Sequence record: MN871453.1 | DNA: 64,000 nucleotides | Direction: 5' to 3' (one strand) | In this document: in pieces, positions 14,418 to 61,943 of the stretch | Numbering within the stretch: the stretch's first letter is position 1 | How the letters are laid out: every line of letters starts with the position of its first letter | Translations under genes and position numbers: made by a program | Notes under the pieces: model-generated | What the model was told of the DNA's origin: nothing | Databases searched by the model: none | What the model saw: only the letters and a program-made list of their open reading frames with translations

Positions 14418-14858
14418 TTATATTCTTTTTAAAGAATCGATTTCCAGCGCCACTTCAAATTCGTAAAGCATTCGCCCGAAGAAGGTCGCAATCGTGAGCA
14501 AGCCGAGGAGGTATTCGTGATGTACCATCAACAGAATCGTAAAAGCCAGTGCAACGATGATTCGCTGACAAACATTCATTCCGCCTACAAAGGTGATGTG
14601 TTTTTCTGCCTTTTCAACGATTACTTGGCGCATAGCGGGGGTCAGGACGGCTCGTGTTATATCGGGCAGTGAAATATATTGGTAAAGCACCCAGCCTAAA
14701 CGACCGAGGATGAGTGCTACTGCCCATAGACGAACCAAATCAAAGGCTGTTTCGTTTTGCTTAAAACACAATACAGCGAGTACCACGCAAGAGAGCAGCG
14801 AGCAAATTTTAGAGGTGAGGGTAGAGAGGTAGAACATCTTTGTATTCCTTTTCTTCAT
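14418..14858 (-). CDS. Integral membrane protein (about 4 TM)
   Basis: 146 aa, hydrophobic segments. Confidence 0.7.
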   Translation of the reverse strand: MKKRNTKMFYLSTLTSKICSLLSCVVLAVLCFKQNETAFDLVRLWAVALILGRLGWVLYQYISLPDITRAVLTPAMRQVIVEKAEKHITFVGGMNVCQRIIVALAFTILLMVHHEYLLGLLTIATFFGRMLYEFEVALEIDSLKRI

Positions 14859-14908
14859 GAATTGTCATAGTTGTCAGGGAACGGTTGTTCCCTGACAATG
14901 GACGGAGA

Positions 14909-15400
14909 TTAGTTACAGGTCAGAACGAGCTTCCCTTGGATATGGGTCACGCCAAATGGCATCTGCTGAGCGTCCAGGTTGATTTTCGGAGCCAGCGCCA
15001 GCGTTTTGGTGTTACCTGCGATATTCTGCGCTTGTGCAGCATCAGTCCACGCGTATTCCACATTGTTAACGAATACGGAAGTTTGATCGCGGTTGCTCAC
15101 CGTCATCAGGTTATCGGCAAAGTCGAAGCGACCAGTGTTTTGGGTCAGTTTCGCTTCAGTGAGGCGCCAGTTTTTCTGGGCCGTGTTGCTGGTCAGCACG
15201 AAGTTGATCGCCTTACTGTTATTAGTGCCGGTTTCGCCTTTCAACAGGATACCGCCGACTTGAACACCGTTCGCGTAATCGATACCGCAGGAGATTTGAG
15301 TTTGGTTGTATTCTGCGTCCCAGACCAGTTCATTGGCAGCAAAAGCCGAAGAGGTCAGTGCCAGAGCGATTACGGAAACAGCGATTTTGATAGATTTCAT
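14909..15400 (-). CDS. Exported fimbrial-subunit-like protein
   Basis: Signal peptide MKSIKIAVSVIALALTSSAFA; alternating N-terminal strand ending in Cys (ELVWDAEYNQTQISC); C-terminal strand PFGVTHIQGKLVLTCN; AGGA SD. Confidence 0.55.
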   Translation of the reverse strand: MKSIKIAVSVIALALTSSAFAANELVWDAEYNQTQISCGIDYANGVQVGGILLKGETGTNNSKAINFVLTSNTAQKNWRLTEAKLTQNTGRFDFADNLMTVSNRDQTSVFVNNVEYAWTDAAQAQNIAGNTKTLALAPKINLDAQQMPFGVTHIQGKLVLTCN

Positions 15401-15460
15401 TTGATACAATTCCTATTTGAATAAAGAAAGGTTTTAGTTAAAAACGACGAGAGTTTACTA

Positions 15461-15865
15461 CTATGGATCAACCTGCATGGCACGCTGAGAATCCATTTGT
15501 TGATTCTTTTCCATGCGATCCATTTCCATCTCCAAACGTTTAATTTGGAGTTCTTTCTGACGGCGACTCAAATCAGCGAGTCTTTCACATGACTCTGCCA
15601 TTTTATCGTCGCCCCCGAGAGGGATACTGATGCTAACGTAACCGCCTTTATCGTCATTAGCATAACGATACTCGCTGCCGTTATTTCCGTACGCACCAAC
15701 GTTGATTGTCGCCTGAGGACGACTAACCTCACAGCTAATATCACCGTTTTGAATACGGCCGCGGTTTTCTGCGATGTTGTTGGTGATATAGGGAGCATCA
15801 GCAAAGGCGGTACAAGCCGTTACCATTGTTACAATGAATAAGAGAATTTTATTCGAGATCGACAT
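15461..15865 (-). CDS. Exported protein with beta-hairpin and C-terminal coiled coil (oligomeric pore candidate)
   Basis: Signal peptide, QATINVGAYG...GGYVSISIPLG, two Cys, coiled coil RRQKELQIKRLEMEMDRMEK. Overlaps the upstream gene by 17 nt. Confidence 0.55.
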   Translation of the reverse strand: MSISNKILLFIVTMVTACTAFADAPYITNNIAENRGRIQNGDISCEVSRPQATINVGAYGNNGSEYRYANDDKGGYVSISIPLGGDDKMAESCERLADLSRRQKELQIKRLEMEMDRMEKNQQMDSQRAMQVDP

Positions 15866-16220
15866 TGAAACATGCCTCTGGCTGAATTTCCGATTGAGGG
15901 ACAACCTGCATGGCGCAGATCATTACGTATTTTTTACCGTTACTTCTCTCCCGAATAAATTTATTATTGACTTTGATAGGGAAGGTTGCCCTTTCTCCAC
16001 CGAAGACATATTTTTTATACGGAACGCCGTTTTTGTCGGCGATTTTTTTATCTTCGACGCGAAATACAAAATCAGAAGATTCTTTCGAATCAACAAACAT
16101 CTCAACAACTGTATAGTTGTCGTATCCGATCGGTGTTACCCGCTGCACCGGGCCGAAATAAAATGCCATGGCATTAACAGAGAACAGCGACAAAAGAGTA
16201 AGTAGTAATAAGTGTTTCAT
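15849..16220 (-). CDS. Exported single Ig-fold, chaperone-like protein
   Basis: Signal peptide MKHLLLLTLLSLFSVNAMA; beta-rich 104-aa mature chain ending YVMICAMQ...EACF. Confidence 0.5.
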   Translation of the reverse strand: MKHLLLLTLLSLFSVNAMAFYFGPVQRVTPIGYDNYTVVEMFVDSKESSDFVFRVEDKKIADKNGVPYKKYVFGGERATFPIKVNNKFIRERSNGKKYVMICAMQVVPQSEIQPEACFNVDLE

Positions 16221-18015: not shown

Positions 18016-18348
18016 TTATTCCTCCGGCCATTGAATGAGAATGGCGTTACCTGTCCGCCGAGAGTATAACTCAGCTTCTTTGGACTTAATACAACGTTGA
18101 ACATACCCAACAGAATAATCACCGTAGTGCGCGATCTCTTCGTCGCGTATCCCGCGTAAATGTGCTTCGTAAATTCCCGTCTGACGGAGATCCATTTGGA
18201 TAAGTTCACGAAGATGGTATTCTTCCTCACGAAGCGCGTTTAGTGCTTTCTCTACCGAACTTTGAGCGATGATATTTGCTTTAAGTTCAAAAAGGCGCTG
18301 TCTTTGATGAGTAGAAATTGCCTCAGAATCATTTAAAAAGCAGTCCAC
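18016..18348 (-). CDS. Hypothetical protein
   Basis: 110 aa in the operon. Confidence 0.6.
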   Translation of the reverse strand: MDCFLNDSEAISTHQRQRLFELKANIIAQSSVEKALNALREEEYHLRELIQMDLRQTGIYEAHLRGIRDEEIAHYGDYSVGYVQRCIKSKEAELYSRRTGNAILIQWPEE

Positions 18349-20921: not shown

Positions 20922-22157
20922 TTACGCCTGAACAGGGTTAGCGTTATCGGACGTCAAGGTTTGATCGATGACGGCGACTTTCTCCTTAGGGTGTTTGATC
21001 TTAAACCGCCTACGCATCTGATAAAGGTAATTCTCATCATCACCAACGTATTTTACCTCATAGCCTACCCGATCAAAATAGGTGATCTCGTCAGGTTTAT
21101 CCGACGCCTTGACTAACGACACCACTACTTTATCATTAAAACGCTTAGAGGTAACTTCGACCCAAGATTGGAATTTTTGCGACGGGAACATAGGTTTTGT
21201 GAAGTTAATCACGAAACGCGCCCCTCTAAACCAAACGAGTTCATCCCCAACCAATTTCGCGTCCAGTGGAATCATTGCGATCAGTCGGGCCAAAGGTGCC
21301 ACTAGTGTACGGGGGAGAGTTTCACCACGGAACATTCCACCGATAGGGACAATTTCGTTACCGCTTTCGTAATCGTCTGTCCAATAAACGTTATCTAAAC
21401 TCATGAGCGCTCTTTTACGGGTTTTCTGATCAAAGGTACCCATCAGCTTAATGAACCGAGTAAAAAGCGCACTGAGTGCTTCCTGTTGGTCTTTATGAAT
21501 AAAGAATGATTCAAGATTGATATAGTCACCGTTAATAAACCCCGCGGCTTGTGTAACAGCACGGGTGTCGGAAATTGCGGCGGCGTGCTCAGGGGATATT
21601 TCTAACGCACCGTCACGATCGGCATAAAAGTGTTTCTCGATATCATCGGGCTGGACCCACGGGAAGGTCACTTCTACCGATGAATAAAAATTGTGGTAAC
21701 CAATAAAGTCACTGCTGTAGGAAGAAGGAGTGTAGAAAATTCTACCGTCTAAAAAACGCGCAATTCCGTCATCGTCCATGAAGACGGCGCTACAACGTTT
21801 GTTCTGTTTGGAGCCATAGCTGTGTTCGGCCCATTCGTCCTCTTCACCTGTCAGTGGTGTTAATGGACGATAGCTCACCAGGGTAATGAATTGTCCCAAT
21901 AACTGGTCGCGTTTAGTATCGTCGAGATTAGGGTTCTCAAACAACAAGCGACTGAAACCGGAAAGTAGTGAGGCATTATCGTCTATAGGGGTCAGTGATT
22001 TTCGCCAGGCTTTGAGGGAACCGATTAAAATCCCGGCGCTGCCACCGGAGTGCCCTTGATCATGCCAGATATCAAACGCTGCACGTAATACGGAACGACT
22101 TTCTTCATCGAGCTTAGCGAATTCAAATTCCGCTTCGAAGTGGGACTGTAAATTCAT
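20922..22157 (-). CDS. Conserved phage hypothetical protein
   Basis: 411 aa with QGHSGGSA...PLTPLTGEEDEW...QNKRCSAVF motifs, which I recall from other phage hypotheticals. Confidence 0.7.
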   Translation of the reverse strand: MNLQSHFEAEFEFAKLDEESRSVLRAAFDIWHDQGHSGGSAGILIGSLKAWRKSLTPIDDNASLLSGFSRLLFENPNLDDTKRDQLLGQFITLVSYRPLTPLTGEEDEWAEHSYGSKQNKRCSAVFMDDDGIARFLDGRIFYTPSSYSSDFIGYHNFYSSVEVTFPWVQPDDIEKHFYADRDGALEISPEHAAAISDTRAVTQAAGFINGDYINLESFFIHKDQQEALSALFTRFIKLMGTFDQKTRKRALMSLDNVYWTDDYESGNEIVPIGGMFRGETLPRTLVAPLARLIAMIPLDAKLVGDELVWFRGARFVINFTKPMFPSQKFQSWVEVTSKRFNDKVVVSLVKASDKPDEITYFDRVGYEVKYVGDDENYLYQMRRRFKIKHPKEKVAVIDQTLTSDNANPVQA

Positions 22158-38244: not shown

Positions 38245-38442
38245 CTAGAAATCCTTGATAAACGTAATTAAGCTTAGATAATGCAACCAGCCGAAGACGA
38301 CGACACAAGCTAACGACTGTAAAACCGTCATCATTTTCTTTTTCAGACCGTCCCGTATTGCAATCCACAGAAAAGCGAAAATCAGGTTACCGCTCAATAA
38401 GACCAATAACCAAAGTAAGGTATTAAGGACGTATGCCATCAA
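38245..38442 (-). CDS. Small membrane protein (2 TM)
   Basis: 65 aa, hydrophobic. Confidence 0.6.
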   Translation of the reverse strand: MMAYVLNTLLWLLVLLSGNLIFAFLWIAIRDGLKKKMMTVLQSLACVVVFGWLHYLSLITFIKDF

Positions 38443-38587
38443 CAGCCCCGGTAATGGTTTCGAGTTTCCAGAATAATTCTTTCCCCTCTCGTTTATCGGG
38501 AGCAGGGAGTTTCCCTTTACTGACGCGAATACGAACAGCGGATTGGGAGATGCCTAACATTTTAGCGACGTCTTTTGTGTTTTTCAA
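38423..38587 (-). CDS. AlpA/excisionase-like winged-HTH micro-protein (54 aa)
   Basis: Hand-translated from TTG 38587 (AAGGA SD): MKNTKDVAKMLGISQSAVRIRVSKGKLPAPDKREGKELFWKLETITGAVDGIRP. Confidence 0.65.
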   Translation of the reverse strand: MKNTKDVAKMLGISQSAVRIRVSKGKLPAPDKREGKELFWKLETITGAVDGIRP

Positions 38588-44089: not shown

Positions 44090-45871
44090 TTACAACCACT
44101 GCGTCGCACGTTGACGAATAGTACGAAGACTTTCCAGTACTTTCACGTCGCCGTTCAGGTACACAGTCCGCATCGCGTCAACCTCACTACCGCGAAGCGC
44201 TTCATACTCTTCACGGGTCAGGTTATCACGCAGTTCGAGTTTTCCGTTCTCGCCCTTCGCAACGATCAGGTAACCTTTTGCCGATTTCTTGGTGCCGTCA
44301 TCGGTTTTCGGGTTTTTCGCGATAGAGTAATATTTACCGTTAACCTTCCCAGCGGTCGCCTTCATGGCGATACCCAGGGTGTCACGGGTAACATACTGGA
44401 ATTCGAAACTGCCCACACCAAAGACCACGTTGGAACTACAGAACCCGTTCGCTTTCAAACGAGAAAGGATCTGTGTCATACGAGTCAATGTGATCGCATC
44501 CCCGTAGATCAAACCGACGTGAGGGTCCAGTTCTTTGTAACCCGCAGCATTGATTGTCCCGCCGAAGATTTCAAAGAGAATTTGTACCGCCCCTTTTTTC
44601 TCTTCCAAAGAAATAGGTTTACCGCTTTTAGTCGAATAGAAAACGTTGTCGATACAATAGCACTCGTATCCGTTTTCAGAAGAAAAACGACGAACGTTTT
44701 CTTCTGTTTTCTCTCGACTTAATTCCGAGTAGAGCGTTTCACCGCCGATTCGCGGGTCGGGATAAATGCCAGCGGAAAGGTGATTATCGCCATCCCAAGT
44801 ATAGCCGCAGAGGATGTGATACGGATTACCGCTATCCGGGCGATAGACCAGTTTACCGTCACGCGCCATAATCGCATCTTTATTAGCGATGGCTTTGGTG
44901 GTGATGGTATCGAAGAAGTCGTTAGTATCGCTGACGAAGCTGAAAACGCCAGACGGATAAACTTCGGTGATCAGTCGACGTTGGAAAAGTTCTTCCGCTT
45001 TCGACAGTAGTTCCGCTTCAGTCGCATCGCGATATCCCGGAGTAGCTTGTAACTGCTCGACATAGACCGCGATATTCAGACAGGTCACACTGTGCTCTGT
45101 AGCGGGTACACTCCCGGCGATTTCAGAAATCGGCATATCGCCTTCTGGGTTATAAAAGCGATTCGCTGTCCAGACCGAAGGGAAGCTATCGCTCCCTTTG
45201 AAGTAGATCAATTGACCGACTGAACTGTTGGCATCATCGAACATCCCCGACATACCGCGCAGGGCGAAGTTATGGGATTGGTAGTCGATAAAGGCTTTTG
45301 CCGCACCCGTTTCGTTAGCGTACTGCTCTAACACTCGACGGAAGTGCAACGCTTTCGTTGCCAGTACACATGGCTTCCAGAGTTCGTTACTCCAGAGGTC
45401 TTCGAAATAACCCGTCAGCCACCCGAAGCCGTCAACTGTGTTTTCAATCGTCAGGAACGGAACACGAATAGGGACGAGTGAGCCTTCCGGCACCGCACGG
45501 ATCTCCAGTGGGATATAACCCAGTTCGTGAAGCGCTTTCAGGTGAGCGGATTTCACCACACCTTTACCCAGAACACCGTCCATGTACTGAAGGTATTCTG
45601 CCTCCGATTCGTTGAACGGCGCTTTAAAGAAGTTATCGAAACTCCCTACCAACCAACGCAGAACCAGGCGCTGCATTCCCATGAACACCGAACCGTCGAA
45701 GTCCAGTGGCGTATTGAAGTACGTATGGCTACGTGCCGTCAGGTTTTCAAAGAAGCTGTCAGTGCCCAGAGGTTGTTGGTTGATGTGCCCAGTTTTGTAG
45801 GCATCGCACAGCAGGAAAACCAGCGGATCTTCAGTATAGAACTTTGGGTCTTTCAGTAAAGGGTTGGTCAT
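44090..45871 (-). CDS. nadV: NAMPT-family enzyme, likely the NARP1 nicotinamide ADPR-transferase (Namat)
   Basis: CDAYKTGH, HNFALRG, VPATEHSV, VSDT, RPDSG, LIYGDAIT, FGVGS, NPKTDDGTKKSAKG; coupled to the Prs-like gene. Confidence 0.85.
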   Translation of the reverse strand: MTNPLLKDPKFYTEDPLVFLLCDAYKTGHINQQPLGTDSFFENLTARSHTYFNTPLDFDGSVFMGMQRLVLRWLVGSFDNFFKAPFNESEAEYLQYMDGVLGKGVVKSAHLKALHELGYIPLEIRAVPEGSLVPIRVPFLTIENTVDGFGWLTGYFEDLWSNELWKPCVLATKALHFRRVLEQYANETGAAKAFIDYQSHNFALRGMSGMFDDANSSVGQLIYFKGSDSFPSVWTANRFYNPEGDMPISEIAGSVPATEHSVTCLNIAVYVEQLQATPGYRDATEAELLSKAEELFQRRLITEVYPSGVFSFVSDTNDFFDTITTKAIANKDAIMARDGKLVYRPDSGNPYHILCGYTWDGDNHLSAGIYPDPRIGGETLYSELSREKTEENVRRFSSENGYECYCIDNVFYSTKSGKPISLEEKKGAVQILFEIFGGTINAAGYKELDPHVGLIYGDAITLTRMTQILSRLKANGFCSSNVVFGVGSFEFQYVTRDTLGIAMKATAGKVNGKYYSIAKNPKTDDGTKKSAKGYLIVAKGENGKLELRDNLTREEYEALRGSEVDAMRTVYLNGDVKVLESLRTIRQRATQWL

Positions 45872-46731
45872 TTCACGCGTCCATCTTTAGCAGTTAAATA
45901 AGATTGGGTTGGTAACCCGTCGTCAGTGATATTTTCCCACCAAACGTTGGTTGAGAAAATCTGATCAAAAGCGATAGAGAGTTCGCCCAGGCCCTTAGAA
46001 AAAATTCCATGGGTCACGAAGAGACTGAGCGATTTCGGGTTTTGGGTATTGAGCTTTTTCGCCAGCTCAGTGAAAGTCCACCCACCATCGCAGATGTCGT
46101 CGACAACCAACAAATTACGACCTTCGATATTGTCATTGTCCAATAACGTAATGTCGAGAATGTTGCCGGTTTTAGTATCGCGCTTTTTGTTTGCGTAAAC
46201 GATAGGCACCCCGCCGAGTAGTTTTGCCAACTCTTCAGTTTTCTTCGCCGCGCCGCCGTCCGGTGAAACTAACACGACGTTATTTTCCCGAATCCAATTA
46301 GCCAATAAATTGTAGACAATTTTGGACTGTTCCAGGACGACGAGGTTTTTGATCAGCGCCGGGGTAACGTTAGAGTGAGGATCGTGTATCAACACTCGGT
46401 CTGCTTTCAGGCTGTTGAACAGTTCAGCAAAAACGCCGAGTGAAAACGATTCGCCTGCATTACAGACACGGTCTTGTCGCGCGTACGGGAAATAAGGCAC
46501 AACTAAATGGAGTTCTGTTTTCGCAGTGTATTTCCCAATACGACGAATGGCATCGACCAGTAACAGTAGACGCACTGCCTCGGTGGAGGATTTGATACTT
46601 CCTTCTATTTTAACAACACCGATATCATGAGGCGGTAGACCATGACGACTAATGGCGATATGTTCCTCGCCACCCGGGAAAGTTAAATTTTCATAAAGGA
46701 CCGGTTGGTCATCAAACGTAACTTTAAACAT
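45868..46731 (-). CDS. prs: Prs-family pyrophosphokinase, likely the NARP1 ADPR-PP synthetase (Adps)
   Basis: FPGGE, PYFPYARQDR, DPHS, VSPDGGA, VDDICDGGWTF, VTHGIFSKG. Confidence 0.88.
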   Translation of the reverse strand: MFKVTFDDQPVLYENLTFPGGEEHIAISRHGLPPHDIGVVKIEGSIKSSTEAVRLLLLVDAIRRIGKYTAKTELHLVVPYFPYARQDRVCNAGESFSLGVFAELFNSLKADRVLIHDPHSNVTPALIKNLVVLEQSKIVYNLLANWIRENNVVLVSPDGGAAKKTEELAKLLGGVPIVYANKKRDTKTGNILDITLLDNDNIEGRNLLVVDDICDGGWTFTELAKKLNTQNPKSLSLFVTHGIFSKGLGELSIAFDQIFSTNVWWENITDDGLPTQSYLTAKDGRVK

Positions 46732-46779
46732 TGTAACCCCTTTCAAAATGTTAAAACTTAATCTTCAAAATAAATATTA

Positions 46780-50038: not shown

Positions 50039-50344
50039 TTATTTAAACGCCGGGTGCAGTTTGATCGCTTTCACTTCGGCGGCCAGCTCTTTATCAGCTT
50101 TGGCTTCAGCGAGGTCAACCGCCTGCTGGAGATTAACCCAGAATTCGACGGTGGTTTTGGTAGCCTTTGCCAGGCGGTGCGCGGTGCGGATCGTCAGTTT
50201 GGTTTTACCGTTGATCAGGCGAGACAGCGTTGCTGTCGCCAGGCCGATATGCGCAGCGAAATCAGTCGGGGAAATTTCTTTCGGTTCCAGGTATTCTTTC
50301 AAAAGAATTTCGCCCGGCGTAGAAGGTTTGCGTGCTTTTGCCAT
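50039..50344 (-). CDS. higA: HigA-family antitoxin / XRE HTH (101 aa), in frame with an upstream ORF extending to 50764
   Basis: TPGEILLKEYLEP..IS...FA...G....LSRLING...LT...AHRLA.......FWVNLQ; its own AAGGA SD. Confidence 0.8.
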   Translation of the reverse strand: MAKARKPSTPGEILLKEYLEPKEISPTDFAAHIGLATATLSRLINGKTKLTIRTAHRLAKATKTTVEFWVNLQQAVDLAEAKADKELAAEVKAIKLHPAFK

Positions 50345-50765
50345 TTTCGGTTTTTCCTTTGGTTTTTCAGGAGGTTGCGTAGTATTACTGTTATTGCATA
50401 ATACTACTTCTTGACGTGAAAGATTACCGAGGAACAGAATCGAGCCAACAGTGAAAATCGACTGTTTTACGCCGTCTGGTGTATTACAGAAAAGGGAGAC
50501 CTGATTTTTATTTTTCTGCAGAAGATCAATGAGCAAATTAACATGATAATCTGGCGGATTATTCAGATCGCGGAAGAGCAGTGCTTCAGCTTCTGTAAAG
50601 CTGATCTTCTTCTCCTGTACCATCACCATCTGAAGAGGGAACTTTAACTTATGGACTAAGATCCGATACGGTAATGAAACTACCGTTTTCAAATTACCCT
50701 CTTTATCGAGAATGAATCGGTTGAGCTCTTCGTCTGTAATGTCATTATTAACGTAGTGAATCATT

Positions 50766-58320: not shown

Positions 58321-58341
58321 GAGAGGGGACGAACCCCTCTC
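58321..58341 (-). terminator. Terminator hairpin
   Basis: GAGAGGGG-ACGAA-CCCCTCTC. Confidence 0.7.
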
Positions 58342-59205: not shown

Positions 59206-59528
59206 TCGGTAAAGGTAATTGAAAAAGTTCCTTCGTTGCGATGCCAGTTAACCAGGAAGGGTAACCCTATTTCTTTTAAGATCTCGTTCAACGCACTTGC
59301 GGGAGTTTCTTGCTGACTTCTCCCGAAAAAGGGATTAGCGATAGTATTTTGTAGCTCCCAGAAACAGTTACCGTTTTTCCGCTTCTTAGAGAAGCGTTTT
59401 CGGGACGTGACGGGTTGTTTCAGATAGAGATGCAAAGGGCCTTTGTTACTCTGAACCACCACTAAACGTACAAACTGGTCGCTGTAACGTAACTCACCAA
59501 ACAAAATGTCTTTGATTTTCTTTAGCAT
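59202..59528 (-). CDS. Hypothetical protein
   Basis: 108 aa. Confidence 0.6.
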   Translation of the reverse strand: MLKKIKDILFGELRYSDQFVRLVVVQSNKGPLHLYLKQPVTSRKRFSKKRKNGNCFWELQNTIANPFFGRSQQETPASALNEILKEIGLPFLVNWHRNEGTFSITFTD

Positions 59529-59755
59529 TCGTTTAAATCTCCAGTAATCATCGTGGTTAAATTCCTGACTTTATTCAGGGTCGCAATGTCTTTTTCGACC
59601 GAGGCCACCGGGATATTGTAAAAGAAAGCGATCTCTTCTACTCGCATACCATGACTGGCAGCGTTCTCCATCGTTCGGGCGATCTGCGGATTTTCGAGTT
59701 GTGACATCAGTTCGTCAAACTCGGCCAGGTAAGCCAGATATTTGTCACGTTGCAT
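59522..59755 (-). CDS. Small HTH protein
   Basis: HGMRVEEIAFFYNIPVASVEKDI. Confidence 0.55.
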   Translation of the reverse strand: MQRDKYLAYLAEFDELMSQLENPQIARTMENAASHGMRVEEIAFFYNIPVASVEKDIATLNKVRNLTTMITGDLNEC

Positions 59756-59787
59756 CCTTAGGTACCTTTTTACTGTGGCGGGTCAAA

Positions 59788-60087
59788 CTACTCATCGTAC
59801 CCTTCTAATAGCGGGCTATGTCCGTTTTTAGAGATCCAAGCCTCCGCTAACTTATCAGATTTTTTCATAATCTCGGTGGCCTCGGTATAAATTTTAATAT
59901 CATGATCGACATCATCTACCGGAACAGAAAAAGCGGCGGCAATTGTCTCGTCGTCTAAACCGTTTTCTCGGAACTGAATAAAGTAATGAGGTAAGTCAGT
60001 CCCGTGGTGTCTCGCGGTAAAAAGTTGATCGTATCCTTTCATCCAAAGTTGATGGATTTCCATTTCTTCCTGTTTTTCTTTTGTCAT
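59788..60087 (-). CDS. Small HTH protein, probable paralogue of 59522
   Basis: NGLDDETIAAAFSVPVDDVDHDI; GAGGTG SD. Confidence 0.55.
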   Translation of the reverse strand: MTKEKQEEMEIHQLWMKGYDQLFTARHHGTDLPHYFIQFRENGLDDETIAAAFSVPVDDVDHDIKIYTEATEIMKKSDKLAEAWISKNGHSPLLEGYDE

Positions 60088-60115
60088 ATTTTCACCTCTT
60101 TCTGAATTTTATACA

Positions 60116-61090
60116 TCAGTCTTCCTTACTGCTCCCGGAAACTACGCTAGTACGAATCCACTTTATTTTCAGTTGGCGATTAGGGCTATTACGAGCACCG
60201 GTCCAATAGCCGTGCCAGTGTGCCCGTCTGATATGCGCTGCTCGCCCGGTCGTCTTCTGTCCTTTCTTTCGCTTCTCGATTTCTTCGAGGTAATCGACCC
60301 CTACTGGAAACTTACGGTGCGCGTTCAGGAACCGTAGGCTATAGTGTTTACCCGACCGTTTCATCTGGGTAAGTCGAAAGGTATTACGGAAGTCAGCGCG
60401 GTCTTGCAACTCGTATTCCTGCGCAACAAACAATGCCACGTTGAGTAGCTTAGTGTACGTTTCACGGTACCCGTCACGCATTAGAATATCGACAGCTTTA
60501 ACCGTATCGATATTGTATTCTTTTGCAGCCCGTACAATAGTAGGGTCAGAAGCAATGACCTCCTCCAGTGTCAAACCTTCATCAAACGGGAAGAATAACG
60601 TTTGCGGGAAGCCGTTATCGTTATACGGGTAAACGATCGTTAGACCCTCTTTCCCGCTCCAGTGTGTAACCGTAGAAAGGAAAATCCCTTCGATAGTCGG
60701 TTCCTCCGGGAGAGGGTGTTTGATAGGGCACGCTGAAAGGTCGACATACCCGGTCCAATGAGGGATAGTTTTCAAAACACTGAGCGGCAATTTACCGTTG
60801 AATTCAGAGTCCAATACATCGGGTAATAATTCAGTAGGGATCTGATATTCAGGTTTAGTAATTTGCCAGCAATACGCCATGCTCATATGCCAAAAGATTT
60901 CACGATAATACGGGTTAGTTAAATCGATCTTATTGTTCCAGTTACGATTCTCTCCCCATATTTCGATAGGGTAGAAATACGGTGGAACCTCCCCTTTCTT
61001 TTCCGTGAGGATACGATTGAAGAAATCCTTCGCGTCCCATGCCCGTAAACGGGGTAAGAGCGTTTTCTCCACTGTCTCCAGTATTTTCAT
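60116..61090 (-). CDS. AcrVA2/FinQ-family-like protein
   Basis: 324 aa; W..T...Y.I..EL...L.D....GKLP..VL..IPHW..YV and C-terminal AHIRRAHWHGYWTG...LKIKWI, matching my recollection of the family. Confidence 0.65.
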   Translation of the reverse strand: MKILETVEKTLLPRLRAWDAKDFFNRILTEKKGEVPPYFYPIEIWGENRNWNNKIDLTNPYYREIFWHMSMAYCWQITKPEYQIPTELLPDVLDSEFNGKLPLSVLKTIPHWTGYVDLSACPIKHPLPEEPTIEGIFLSTVTHWSGKEGLTIVYPYNDNGFPQTLFFPFDEGLTLEEVIASDPTIVRAAKEYNIDTVKAVDILMRDGYRETYTKLLNVALFVAQEYELQDRADFRNTFRLTQMKRSGKHYSLRFLNAHRKFPVGVDYLEEIEKRKKGQKTTGRAAHIRRAHWHGYWTGARNSPNRQLKIKWIRTSVVSGSSKED

Positions 61091-61393
61091 TTAGCTCTCC
61101 TCAGACTCGCGTGTTCCCAGGTTCCCGTTTCCGTTAAAGACGATTTGATAGTCTAACGTACCTTTACTGTTCAGCTCCTCTAAATGCTCAGAGACGGCCT
61201 CGTTATAGGGTTTGAGTAAGTGGTTCTTACCCAGCGCCTCTAGCGTCATGAAAATGATCAGAGTACTTTGATCAATCGGCGTAATGTTCTTATTCGTCAA
61301 GATCTCAATGACACGCGGAATATTCGCCTTGAGTTTCTCTAGGTCTTCATTCACCCGTAATCCCCTTATAAAACAATTCCATCCCTTTCTCAA
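61091..61393 (-). CDS. Hypothetical protein (start uncertain)
   Basis: 100 aa. Confidence 0.55.
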   Translation of the reverse strand: MRKGWNCFIRGLRVNEDLEKLKANIPRVIEILTNKNITPIDQSTLIIFMTLEALGKNHLLKPYNEAVSEHLEELNSKGTLDYQIVFNGNGNLGTRESEES

Positions 61394-61943
61394 CGTTACT
61401 GCAAAAGACAGAGAAAAGCGCCTCTCGTAGCGATTGCGGCCGGAAGGGGTTATTGGCCTGCACGTGAACGTCGTAAACCGCTTTGTTTGCTAAACGTGCA
61501 GTGAACGTTTGTTTTGTCAATTTAAGCGTCTTGACGTCATGGCCGTAGGATTTACAGACCTTCCGTCCCTCGGTAAAGACCAACCCCATCGCACCGTGAC
61601 CAACCAAAAGTTTGTCAGTCGGTACGAGTAGCGGGTGCTCTTTAGTACGGGGGCTAACAACCGTCCACCACATGTTCACAGGGATGAACCAATATGCATC
61701 TTTCGGGTTAAGATGCGTCCAGTCGCGGATGCAGTTGTACATCTCTTCCTGCGTGGTCGGGCGGAAGTCGACCTGAACCCCGTTCATATTTTCACTGTGG
61801 TCATATTCGTAGATTTTACGGCCCATCTTAACCGAATAGACAAAGGCAATAATCGAATTATCTTGACGTAAAAGATTTTCTCTTGCCCATTTGCCGTATT
61901 CGATCTCTAACGCGATGACCTTTTCTGCAATGCTGTTTTCCAT
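61347..61943 (-). CDS. Hypothetical protein
   Basis: 198 aa, AAGGA SD. Confidence 0.65.
   Translation of the reverse strand: MENSIAEKVIALEIEYGKWARENLLRQDNSIIAFVYSVKMGRKIYEYDHSENMNGVQVDFRPTTQEEMYNCIRDWTHLNPKDAYWFIPVNMWWTVVSPRTKEHPLLVPTDKLLVGHGAMGLVFTEGRKVCKSYGHDVKTLKLTKQTFTARLANKAVYDVHVQANNPFRPQSLREALFSVFCSNVEKGMELFYKGITGE

Follow-up and report, generated by a model that had tools for sequence, protein, structure and literature searches.

The AcrVA2/FinQ-family gene at 60116-61090

We analysed a 64,000-nucleotide (nt) stretch of sequence record MN871453.1 (hereafter, the window) at a group of three open reading frames (ORFs) on its minus strand: an intact gene for a protein of 324 amino acids (aa) that belongs to the AcrVA2/FinQ family (60116-61090), followed by genes for two small proteins of 99 aa (59788-60087) and 77 aa (59522-59755). 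All three ORFs were found exactly at the bounds given in a preliminary description of the window, in which they had been read as an AcrVA2/FinQ-like gene followed by two related helix-turn-helix (HTH) genes forming an "acr-aca-like module". The tested 5 kb of the window showed 100% identity to jumbo phages of Klebsiella pneumoniae with genomes of about 299 kb, the KpSz_1/KpLz-2_45 group. Since the 324-aa ORF was 100% identical in sister phages and an exhaustive HMMER search with its product gave 915 cluster representatives at E ≤ 1e-3, it lies far beyond what chance would produce. Purine-rich ribosome-binding sites precede both of the small genes.

The 324-aa protein directly matched AcrVA2 (Protein Data Bank (PDB) entry 7ci1) in a phmmer search against the PDB (E 2.8e-7, in two stretches) and matched PHROG 6160 with an E value of 2e-36. 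The profile of a 96-sequence family alignment of the protein (A1) aligned with 7ci1 over essentially the full length (positions 12-327 against 9-319) with an E value of 1.8e-47. An AlphaFold (AF2) model based on A1 had a predicted local distance difference test score (pLDDT) of 92.3 and a predicted template modelling score (pTM) of 0.90, and when it was compared with the PDB by Foldseek, 7ci2 and 7ci1 were the sole significant entries (E 5e-12 to 1e-11, probability 1.00). The matches of the model in a viral structure library (E 1e-16 to 1e-17) were uncharacterised proteins from Dickeya and Erwinia phages and from uncultured phages. Furthermore, the Pfam family PF26125 (AcrVA2-like) is precomputed on a 100%-identical cluster representative (P0001) and on homologues of the protein. 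Local scans of Pfam-A and NCBIfam gave no match for the 324-aa protein, PF26125 being presumably not in the Pfam copy that was scanned; family membership is based on the matches to the PDB and PHROG, the profile, the fold, and the precomputed Pfam label. Taken together, the sequence comparisons and the predicted model identify the 324-aa protein as a genuine, intact member of the AcrVA2/FinQ family with the AcrVA2 fold, and the assignment made in the preliminary description is thus upheld by sequence, profile, structure, and Pfam family. Next after AcrVA2 in the Foldseek list of PDB entries stood DnaK/Hsp70 substrate-binding domains, which were non-significant (E 0.1-1.3, template modelling (TM) score about 0.09) and were not used; their rank just below AcrVA2 is curious for a presumed nascent-peptide binder.

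AcrVA2 itself comes from a Moraxella bovoculi prophage (PDB 7ci1/7ci2). It is nearly equal in length to the protein described here (323 aa in the PDB chain), whereas the identity in the structural alignment was about 16% and the N-terminal and middle domains were divergent. Plasmid genes annotated as "protein finQ" were matched by the 324-aa protein in tblastn (E 1e-10, 28% identity over 244 aa, residues 69-312), and the alignment omits about the first 70 residues. FinQ, the fertility inhibitor encoded by IncI/F-like plasmids, shares with the 324-aa protein both the Pfam family and the HxR block at the C-terminus. Conjugative plasmids accounted for 597 of the 660 plasmid matches, many of them from Enterobacteriaceae. 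AcrVA2-like genes are also carried by other large virulent phages, both chimalliviruses and other jumbo phages (Erwinia Alexandravirus, Yoloswag, RisingSun, and Special G; Dickeya JA13; the huge phages of Al-Shayeb et al.), and their products showed 22-28% identity over about 93% of the length. These genes differ from the one in the window in having other neighbours with no small-domain gene beside them, and several of the carriers lie outside Chimalliviridae. The RisingSun homologue is annotated as a "putative mycothiosynthase", a label that the family evidence does not support.

A C-terminal motif, H-I-R-R-A-H-W-H-G-Y-W, had been pointed out in the preliminary description, and it was located at residues 286-296 (60203-60235, minus strand), comprising H286, R288, H291, W292, H293, and W296. 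In AcrVA2, H286, R288, and H291 are essential, as alanine substitution abolishes activity, and W79 and D89 contribute with a moderate effect (Marino et al., bioRxiv 10.1101/2022.11.29.518452). The three essential residues are retained in the 324-aa protein together with the following W-H-G-Y-W. In the columns of A1, R288 and H291 were invariant and H286 was present in 95 of the 96 sequences. W79 of AcrVA2 aligned with W75 of the 324-aa protein, a column with W in 93 of 96 sequences. The D89 column is variable across the family, because D was found in only 52 of 96 sequences. When the protein was compared with distant members, residues 281-324 were 43% identical and the remainder 11-24%, which agrees with the published picture of a family with a conserved C-terminus and an otherwise divergent sequence (Marino et al., bioRxiv 10.1101/2022.11.29.518452). 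Identity along the protein was uniform among members of the close clade (52-67% per segment), and none of the segments was hypervariable.

Gene order and transcription unit

Immediately upstream of the AcrVA2-like gene, a small gene was found at 61091-61393 on the minus strand (87-100 aa, depending on the choice of start), which is annotated as a 264-nt coding sequence in phage KpLz-2_45. The TAA stop of this gene abuts the ATG of the AcrVA2-like gene at 61090, so that a dedicated promoter or operator would have no space between them, and the Shine-Dalgarno-like GAGGAG is located within the upstream gene. No inverted repeat was found at 59400-61500, and at 57-64 kb there were no operator-like inverted repeats, no sigma-70 promoter-like sites above the shuffled expectation, and no Rfam RNA family. 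A consensus scan located a terminator-like GC-rich hairpin (eight pairs, six of them GC) followed by a T-run at 58321-58341 on the minus strand, downstream of a 157-aa gene; this hairpin is the probable end of the transcription unit. In the related phage FBKp24, annotated terminators flank gp189-gp207, the AcrVA2-like gene (gp195) is the seventh gene of this block, and the record annotates no promoter before gp195. The AcrVA2-like gene is located mid-way in a long co-directional gene block.

Seven related loci showed the same order, namely the AcrVA2-like gene, a slot of zero to two genes, a gene of the 77-aa family, and common downstream genes. In the window and in L019, the slot is occupied by a 99-aa family gene, which is joined by a gp196-like gene in L020; FBKp24 has two unrelated genes at this place, and L008 has one gene. 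In L005, the slot is empty, the 99-aa family gene being found on the upstream side of the AcrVA2-like gene. The slot is likewise empty in L006, where the immediately downstream gene matched the 77-aa family weakly (E 0.037). In FBKp24, L005, L006, L008, L019, and L020, the AcrVA2-like gene is separated by 0-2 genes from a downstream orthologue of the 77-aa gene. Because the same gene order extends over all seven related loci, the adjacency of the AcrVA2-like gene and the small genes is regarded as general synteny of one clade. The small-domain family was not found beside the AcrVA2-like genes of Erwinia phages, of a 45% homologue (L007), or of six diverse family members; a recognised HTH gene (HTH_3/HTH_31) comes directly after the AcrVA2-like gene in only one of these six (L018).

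If the locus were a genuine acr-aca-like module, transcription of the AcrVA2-like gene would be tuned by a repressor that binds DNA, as that of acr genes is by Aca proteins, and this repressor would be the 77-aa protein, perhaps together with the 99-aa protein. Like an acr-aca operon, the locus has a putative anti-defence gene with genes for small, plausibly HTH, proteins tightly spaced behind it on the same strand. The position of the 77-aa family across the clade and the HTH gene in L018 are also consistent with such a module, as is the likeness of the 77-aa fold to sigma region 4 and LuxR DNA-binding domains described below. On the other hand, the AcrVA2-like gene has no intergenic space before it and no inverted repeat, and unlike the genes of acr-aca operons it is embedded, without its own promoter or operator, in a long block. 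This block is bounded by terminators in FBKp24, with the AcrVA2-like gene only in seventh place, and it is syntenic as a whole, so that the adjacency is unspecific. In addition, the small domain is of a sigma region 4/LuxR type without a significant HTH family match and is dispersed in the genome, occurring also far from any AcrVA2-like gene, and a repressor would presumably have to enter the phage nucleus too. Such a repressor module is thus improbable, and we find no support for a classical acr-aca cassette: the lack of intergenic space and operator, the long terminator-bounded block, the variable slot, and the dispersed domain all speak against the regulatory cassette suggested in the preliminary description. 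We favour, with some confidence, the reading in which the small genes adjoin the AcrVA2-like gene as part of a long block of accessory genes and are co-transcribed with it, taken jointly with the family assignment above and the silencing role discussed below.

The two small downstream proteins

A BLASTP comparison of the 99-aa protein with the 77-aa protein gave no alignment. A 23-residue local match between them was equalled in 4 of 2000 shuffles, and when the profiles of the two small-protein families (A2 and A3) were compared by hhalign, 42 columns were aligned with a probability of 91.9% (E 6.8e-7). Based on the shuffle test and the profile comparison, the two proteins are related at the domain level. 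The shared helical domain comprises residues 34-75 of the 99-aa protein (59863-59988) and residues 27-68 of the 77-aa protein (59552-59677). The claim of two related HTH genes therefore stands for the domain only as to their relationship, and the HTH assignment was non-significant by both HMM and fold search. None of the Pfam and NCBIfam HTH models scored above cutoff for the small proteins; the best sub-threshold matches were to extracytoplasmic function (ECF) sigma region 4 (E 0.002-0.02) and, in the FBKp24 orthologue, to a DeoR-type HTH (E 0.008).

Homologue searches with the small proteins gave only close relatives, and their alignments are consequently shallow; the AF2 model of the 77-aa protein was calculated on 7 sequences. 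The model had a pLDDT of 91.3 and four helices (residues 2-18, 26-34, 39-46, and 50-75). Foldseek gave no significant match for it (best E 0.74; listed E 0.7-3; TM 0.4-0.63), and the top entries were region 4 of SigR, SigE, AlgU, and SigH and the LuxR/FixJ proteins DesR, StyR, and EsrB. An HTH is plausible for the 77-aa protein because almost all of the top ranks were sigma region 4 and LuxR/FixJ domains, and on the predicted fold the small domain may plausibly be an HTH of the sigma-70 region 4/LuxR type. Both small-protein profiles also matched PDB entry 8vd6 ("CAP REPEAT"); as this is a repeat protein designed de novo, the match carries no information and was set aside.

The distribution of the small domain was surveyed in the window and in 176 kb of FBKp24. 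A third member, a 110-aa protein encoded at 18016-18348 on the minus strand, was found 41 kb from 59522-61090 (hhalign against A2, probability 83%, E 8.6e-6; hmmsearch, E 5e-6 among the 682 ORF fragments of the window). FBKp24 has the domain in at least three genes beyond the orthologue of the 77-aa gene, namely gp342, gp360, and gp265 (L010 15970-16203, L010 1010-1351, and L011 24383-24715, respectively), and one of the FBKp24 small-domain genes adjoins RNA-polymerase beta-subunit genes. As judged from these sequence matches, the domain of about 42 residues is a small family scattered through these phage genomes. The gene for the 99-aa protein is restricted to one phage clade and is absent from FBKp24 and L008. 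In phage MJ359 (PQ182779.1), the 99-aa protein was 49.5% identical to that of the window, and the flanking AcrVA2-like and 77-aa proteins were 97.5% and 100% identical, respectively. This divergence points to allele replacement in a variable slot.

Instead of binding DNA, the small proteins might also act as protein partners of the AcrVA2-like protein, for instance to confer specificity as an adaptor or to restrain its activity. The conserved proximity of the 77-aa family, with the overlap of its start and the AcrVA2-like stop in L005, the fact that the 99-aa family adjoins the AcrVA2-like gene even on the changed side in L005, and the turnover of the 99-aa allele in MJ359 beside 97-100% identical neighbours would all be consistent with such a partnership. 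However, the 99-aa gene is missing from FBKp24 and L008, and related domain proteins are encoded elsewhere, in one case beside RNA-polymerase genes. Distant AcrVA2-like genes, moreover, have no such partner. We consider a partner role to be quite unlikely.

Phage biology, target, and significance

The KpSz_1/KpLz-2_45 group corresponds to the genus Siatvirus, which is placed within Chimalliviridae in the NCBI taxonomy. The record of the relative FBKp24 annotates a shell-protein homologue, a PhuZ tubulin, and a multisubunit RNA polymerase, and the structural genes of the window are phiKZ-like. The window thus represents a Klebsiella chimallivirus (Siatvirus), a nucleus-forming jumbo phage, in accordance with the premise of the preliminary description. 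Several public records are titled "Serratia phage Kp..." despite Klebsiella pneumoniae being given as the host. In chimalliviruses, transcripts are translated in the cytoplasm, and ribosomes are reported to be modulated by jumbo phages early in infection (review PMC13282480).

The CRISPR types reported for K. pneumoniae are I-E, I-F, and IV-A, with no V-A (PMC11792477), and most members of the AcrVA2 family occur without Cas12a (Marino et al., bioRxiv 10.1101/2022.11.29.518452). Cas12a was therefore rejected as the target, being unreported in this species (PMC11792477). The reported host types and the occurrence of the family together argue for a target other than Cas12a, as had been proposed beforehand for this gene and already published as a hypothesis for the family (Marino et al.), and they leave the name "Acr" unjustified for the 324-aa protein. 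The setting also differs from that of AcrVA2, which is encoded by a prophage: the present gene belongs to a virulent nucleus-forming jumbo phage of a host species without reported Cas12a, and no acrVA1-like neighbour was identified at the gene.

Compared with its FBKp24 orthologue, the 324-aa protein was 84.8% identical and ranked 17th among 95 orthologue pairs, for which the median was 64%. It was about 85% identical in L019 and L020, and the neighbouring proteins there were 37-73% identical. Such slow evolution of the AcrVA2-like gene is less suggestive of a rapid arms race than of a target or machine that is itself conserved. A link of the gene to nucleus formation was rejected, as homologues are also present in non-chimalliviral jumbo phages.

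According to an editorial (PMC13728456) on a 2026 publication, the C-terminal part of AcrVA2 binds ribosomes and polysomes, and AcrVA2 does not itself cut mRNA but recruits a cellular enzyme. By homology, the 324-aa protein would act in the cytoplasm, the site where both chimallivirus and host mRNAs are translated. It would dock on the ribosome through its conserved C-terminus, its divergent N-terminal and middle domains would recognise one particular nascent protein, and the mRNA of the recognised protein would then be removed by a recruited host enzyme. On balance, we think it probable that this Klebsiella chimallivirus encodes an AcrVA2/FinQ-family member that silences one specific target other than Cas12a and does so outside any acr-aca cassette.

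Several observations weigh against this interpretation. Ribosome binding, the existence of a target, and mRNA loss are extrapolated by analogy from a relative with about 16-25% identity. The model of the 324-aa protein superposed on AcrVA2 only moderately over its whole length (TM 0.51-0.57 (0.55), root-mean-square deviation about 7 Å). The position of D89 in AcrVA2 is occupied by P85 in the 324-aa protein, and a near-invariant proline column (P314) has T. As for the small genes, a gene of the 77-aa family is always found close by throughout the clade of at least 50% identity, and in L005 its start overlaps the stop of the AcrVA2-like gene. A looser functional coupling of the 77-aa gene with the AcrVA2-like gene may exist.

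The slow evolution would also be explained if the fold had been kept for another role, the protein being a general ribosome-associated factor of host takeover or a regulator of phage mRNA without single-target specificity. Its rank among the orthologue pairs is like that of structural and metabolic genes, the uniform identity in the close clade leaves no hypervariable target-binding patch, and the early modulation of ribosomes reported for jumbo phages (PMC13282480) would suit such a factor. The gene is, however, not universal in Chimalliviridae and is found in non-chimalliviral jumbo phages, small phages, and plasmids as well, and the sole member studied is highly specific (Marino et al., bioRxiv 10.1101/2022.11.29.518452). 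A general role of this kind therefore seems unlikely.

If the protein does silence a single target, that target could be a gene of a competing mobile element, such as a conjugative plasmid, a prophage, or a co-infecting phage, instead of a host defence. Klebsiella is rich in conjugative plasmids. By the tblastn match described above, the 324-aa protein is somewhat closer to plasmid FinQ than to AcrVA2, and the prevalence of conjugative plasmids among its plasmid matches points in the same direction. FinQ lowers the mRNA of F transfer genes (Marino et al., bioRxiv 10.1101/2022.11.29.518452). Unlike FinQ, which is plasmid-borne, the 324-aa gene has no conjugation context, and there is little obvious need for a virulent jumbo phage to block conjugation. 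Moreover, a target that is encoded by the host and itself conserved would account at least equally well for the strong conservation of the protein across phage genera. A FinQ-like role is accordingly rather unlikely, and we retain as the preferred reading a family member that silences one specific non-Cas12a target.

A more detailed version can be formulated, in which the AcrVA2-like protein would be a slow-evolving cytoplasmic factor that removes the mRNA of a conserved Klebsiella protein against which the phage nucleus gives no shield, for example an RNA-sensing or abortive-infection defence. The scattered sigma-region-4-like mini-proteins would then be an undescribed family of modulators of phage transcription or of the host RNA polymerase, one of them being functionally coupled to the AcrVA2-like protein. 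In this full form, the proposal is speculative and has a small chance of being correct.

Other genes of the window were also noted. A 411-aa protein encoded at 20922-22157 on the minus strand matched Pfam PF25185 (Tad3, an inhibitor of type I Thoeris) above cutoff with its N-terminal 146 residues (E 1.5e-24) and has a C-terminal extension of about 265 residues beyond the match; from this similarity the gene is a candidate anti-Thoeris gene. At 44090-46746 on the minus strand, a gene for a NAMPT-like protein (593 aa) adjoins one for a ribose-phosphate diphosphokinase (292 aa), with 85% and 96% identity to FBKp24, respectively. These could be an NAD-salvage pair that replenishes NAD+ lost to host defences. 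A block of about 1.8 kb at 14418-16205 contains ORFs that are 97-99% identical to FBKp24, against the window median of 64%, which suggests a recent exchange between two genera or extreme constraint. Two further ORFs on the minus strand have HTH-like sequences: a 241-aa protein at 50039-50764, which carries an HTH_3 domain at its C-terminus (E 3.6e-9) and goes under the name "plasmid antitoxin with HTH domain" in the FBKp24 annotation, and a 54-aa HTH_17/MerR-like ORF at 38423-38587, just under cutoff (E 1.7e-5).

The spread of the family to plasmids and "megaphages" has already been stated (Marino et al., bioRxiv 10.1101/2022.11.29.518452), a 2019 report had described proteins of huge phages that cluster with AcrVA2, and the copy in Erwinia phage Special G is annotated as "putative protein FinQ". 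A 2026 review of jumbo phages (PMC13282480) does not mention the AcrVA2/FinQ family. No new principle is added here, since the family and its Pfam model, its occurrence in huge phages, and the Erwinia "FinQ" annotation were all on record beforehand. AcrVA2 is the first bacterial case of a protein that selects one nascent polypeptide and has its mRNA destroyed. The 324-aa copy is intact, is strongly conserved across at least four related lineages of Klebsiella jumbo phages, and is carried by a phage that has its mRNAs translated in the host cytoplasm. It therefore offers a sensible natural system in which a target of the family other than Cas12a could come to light from expression data on ordinary infections.

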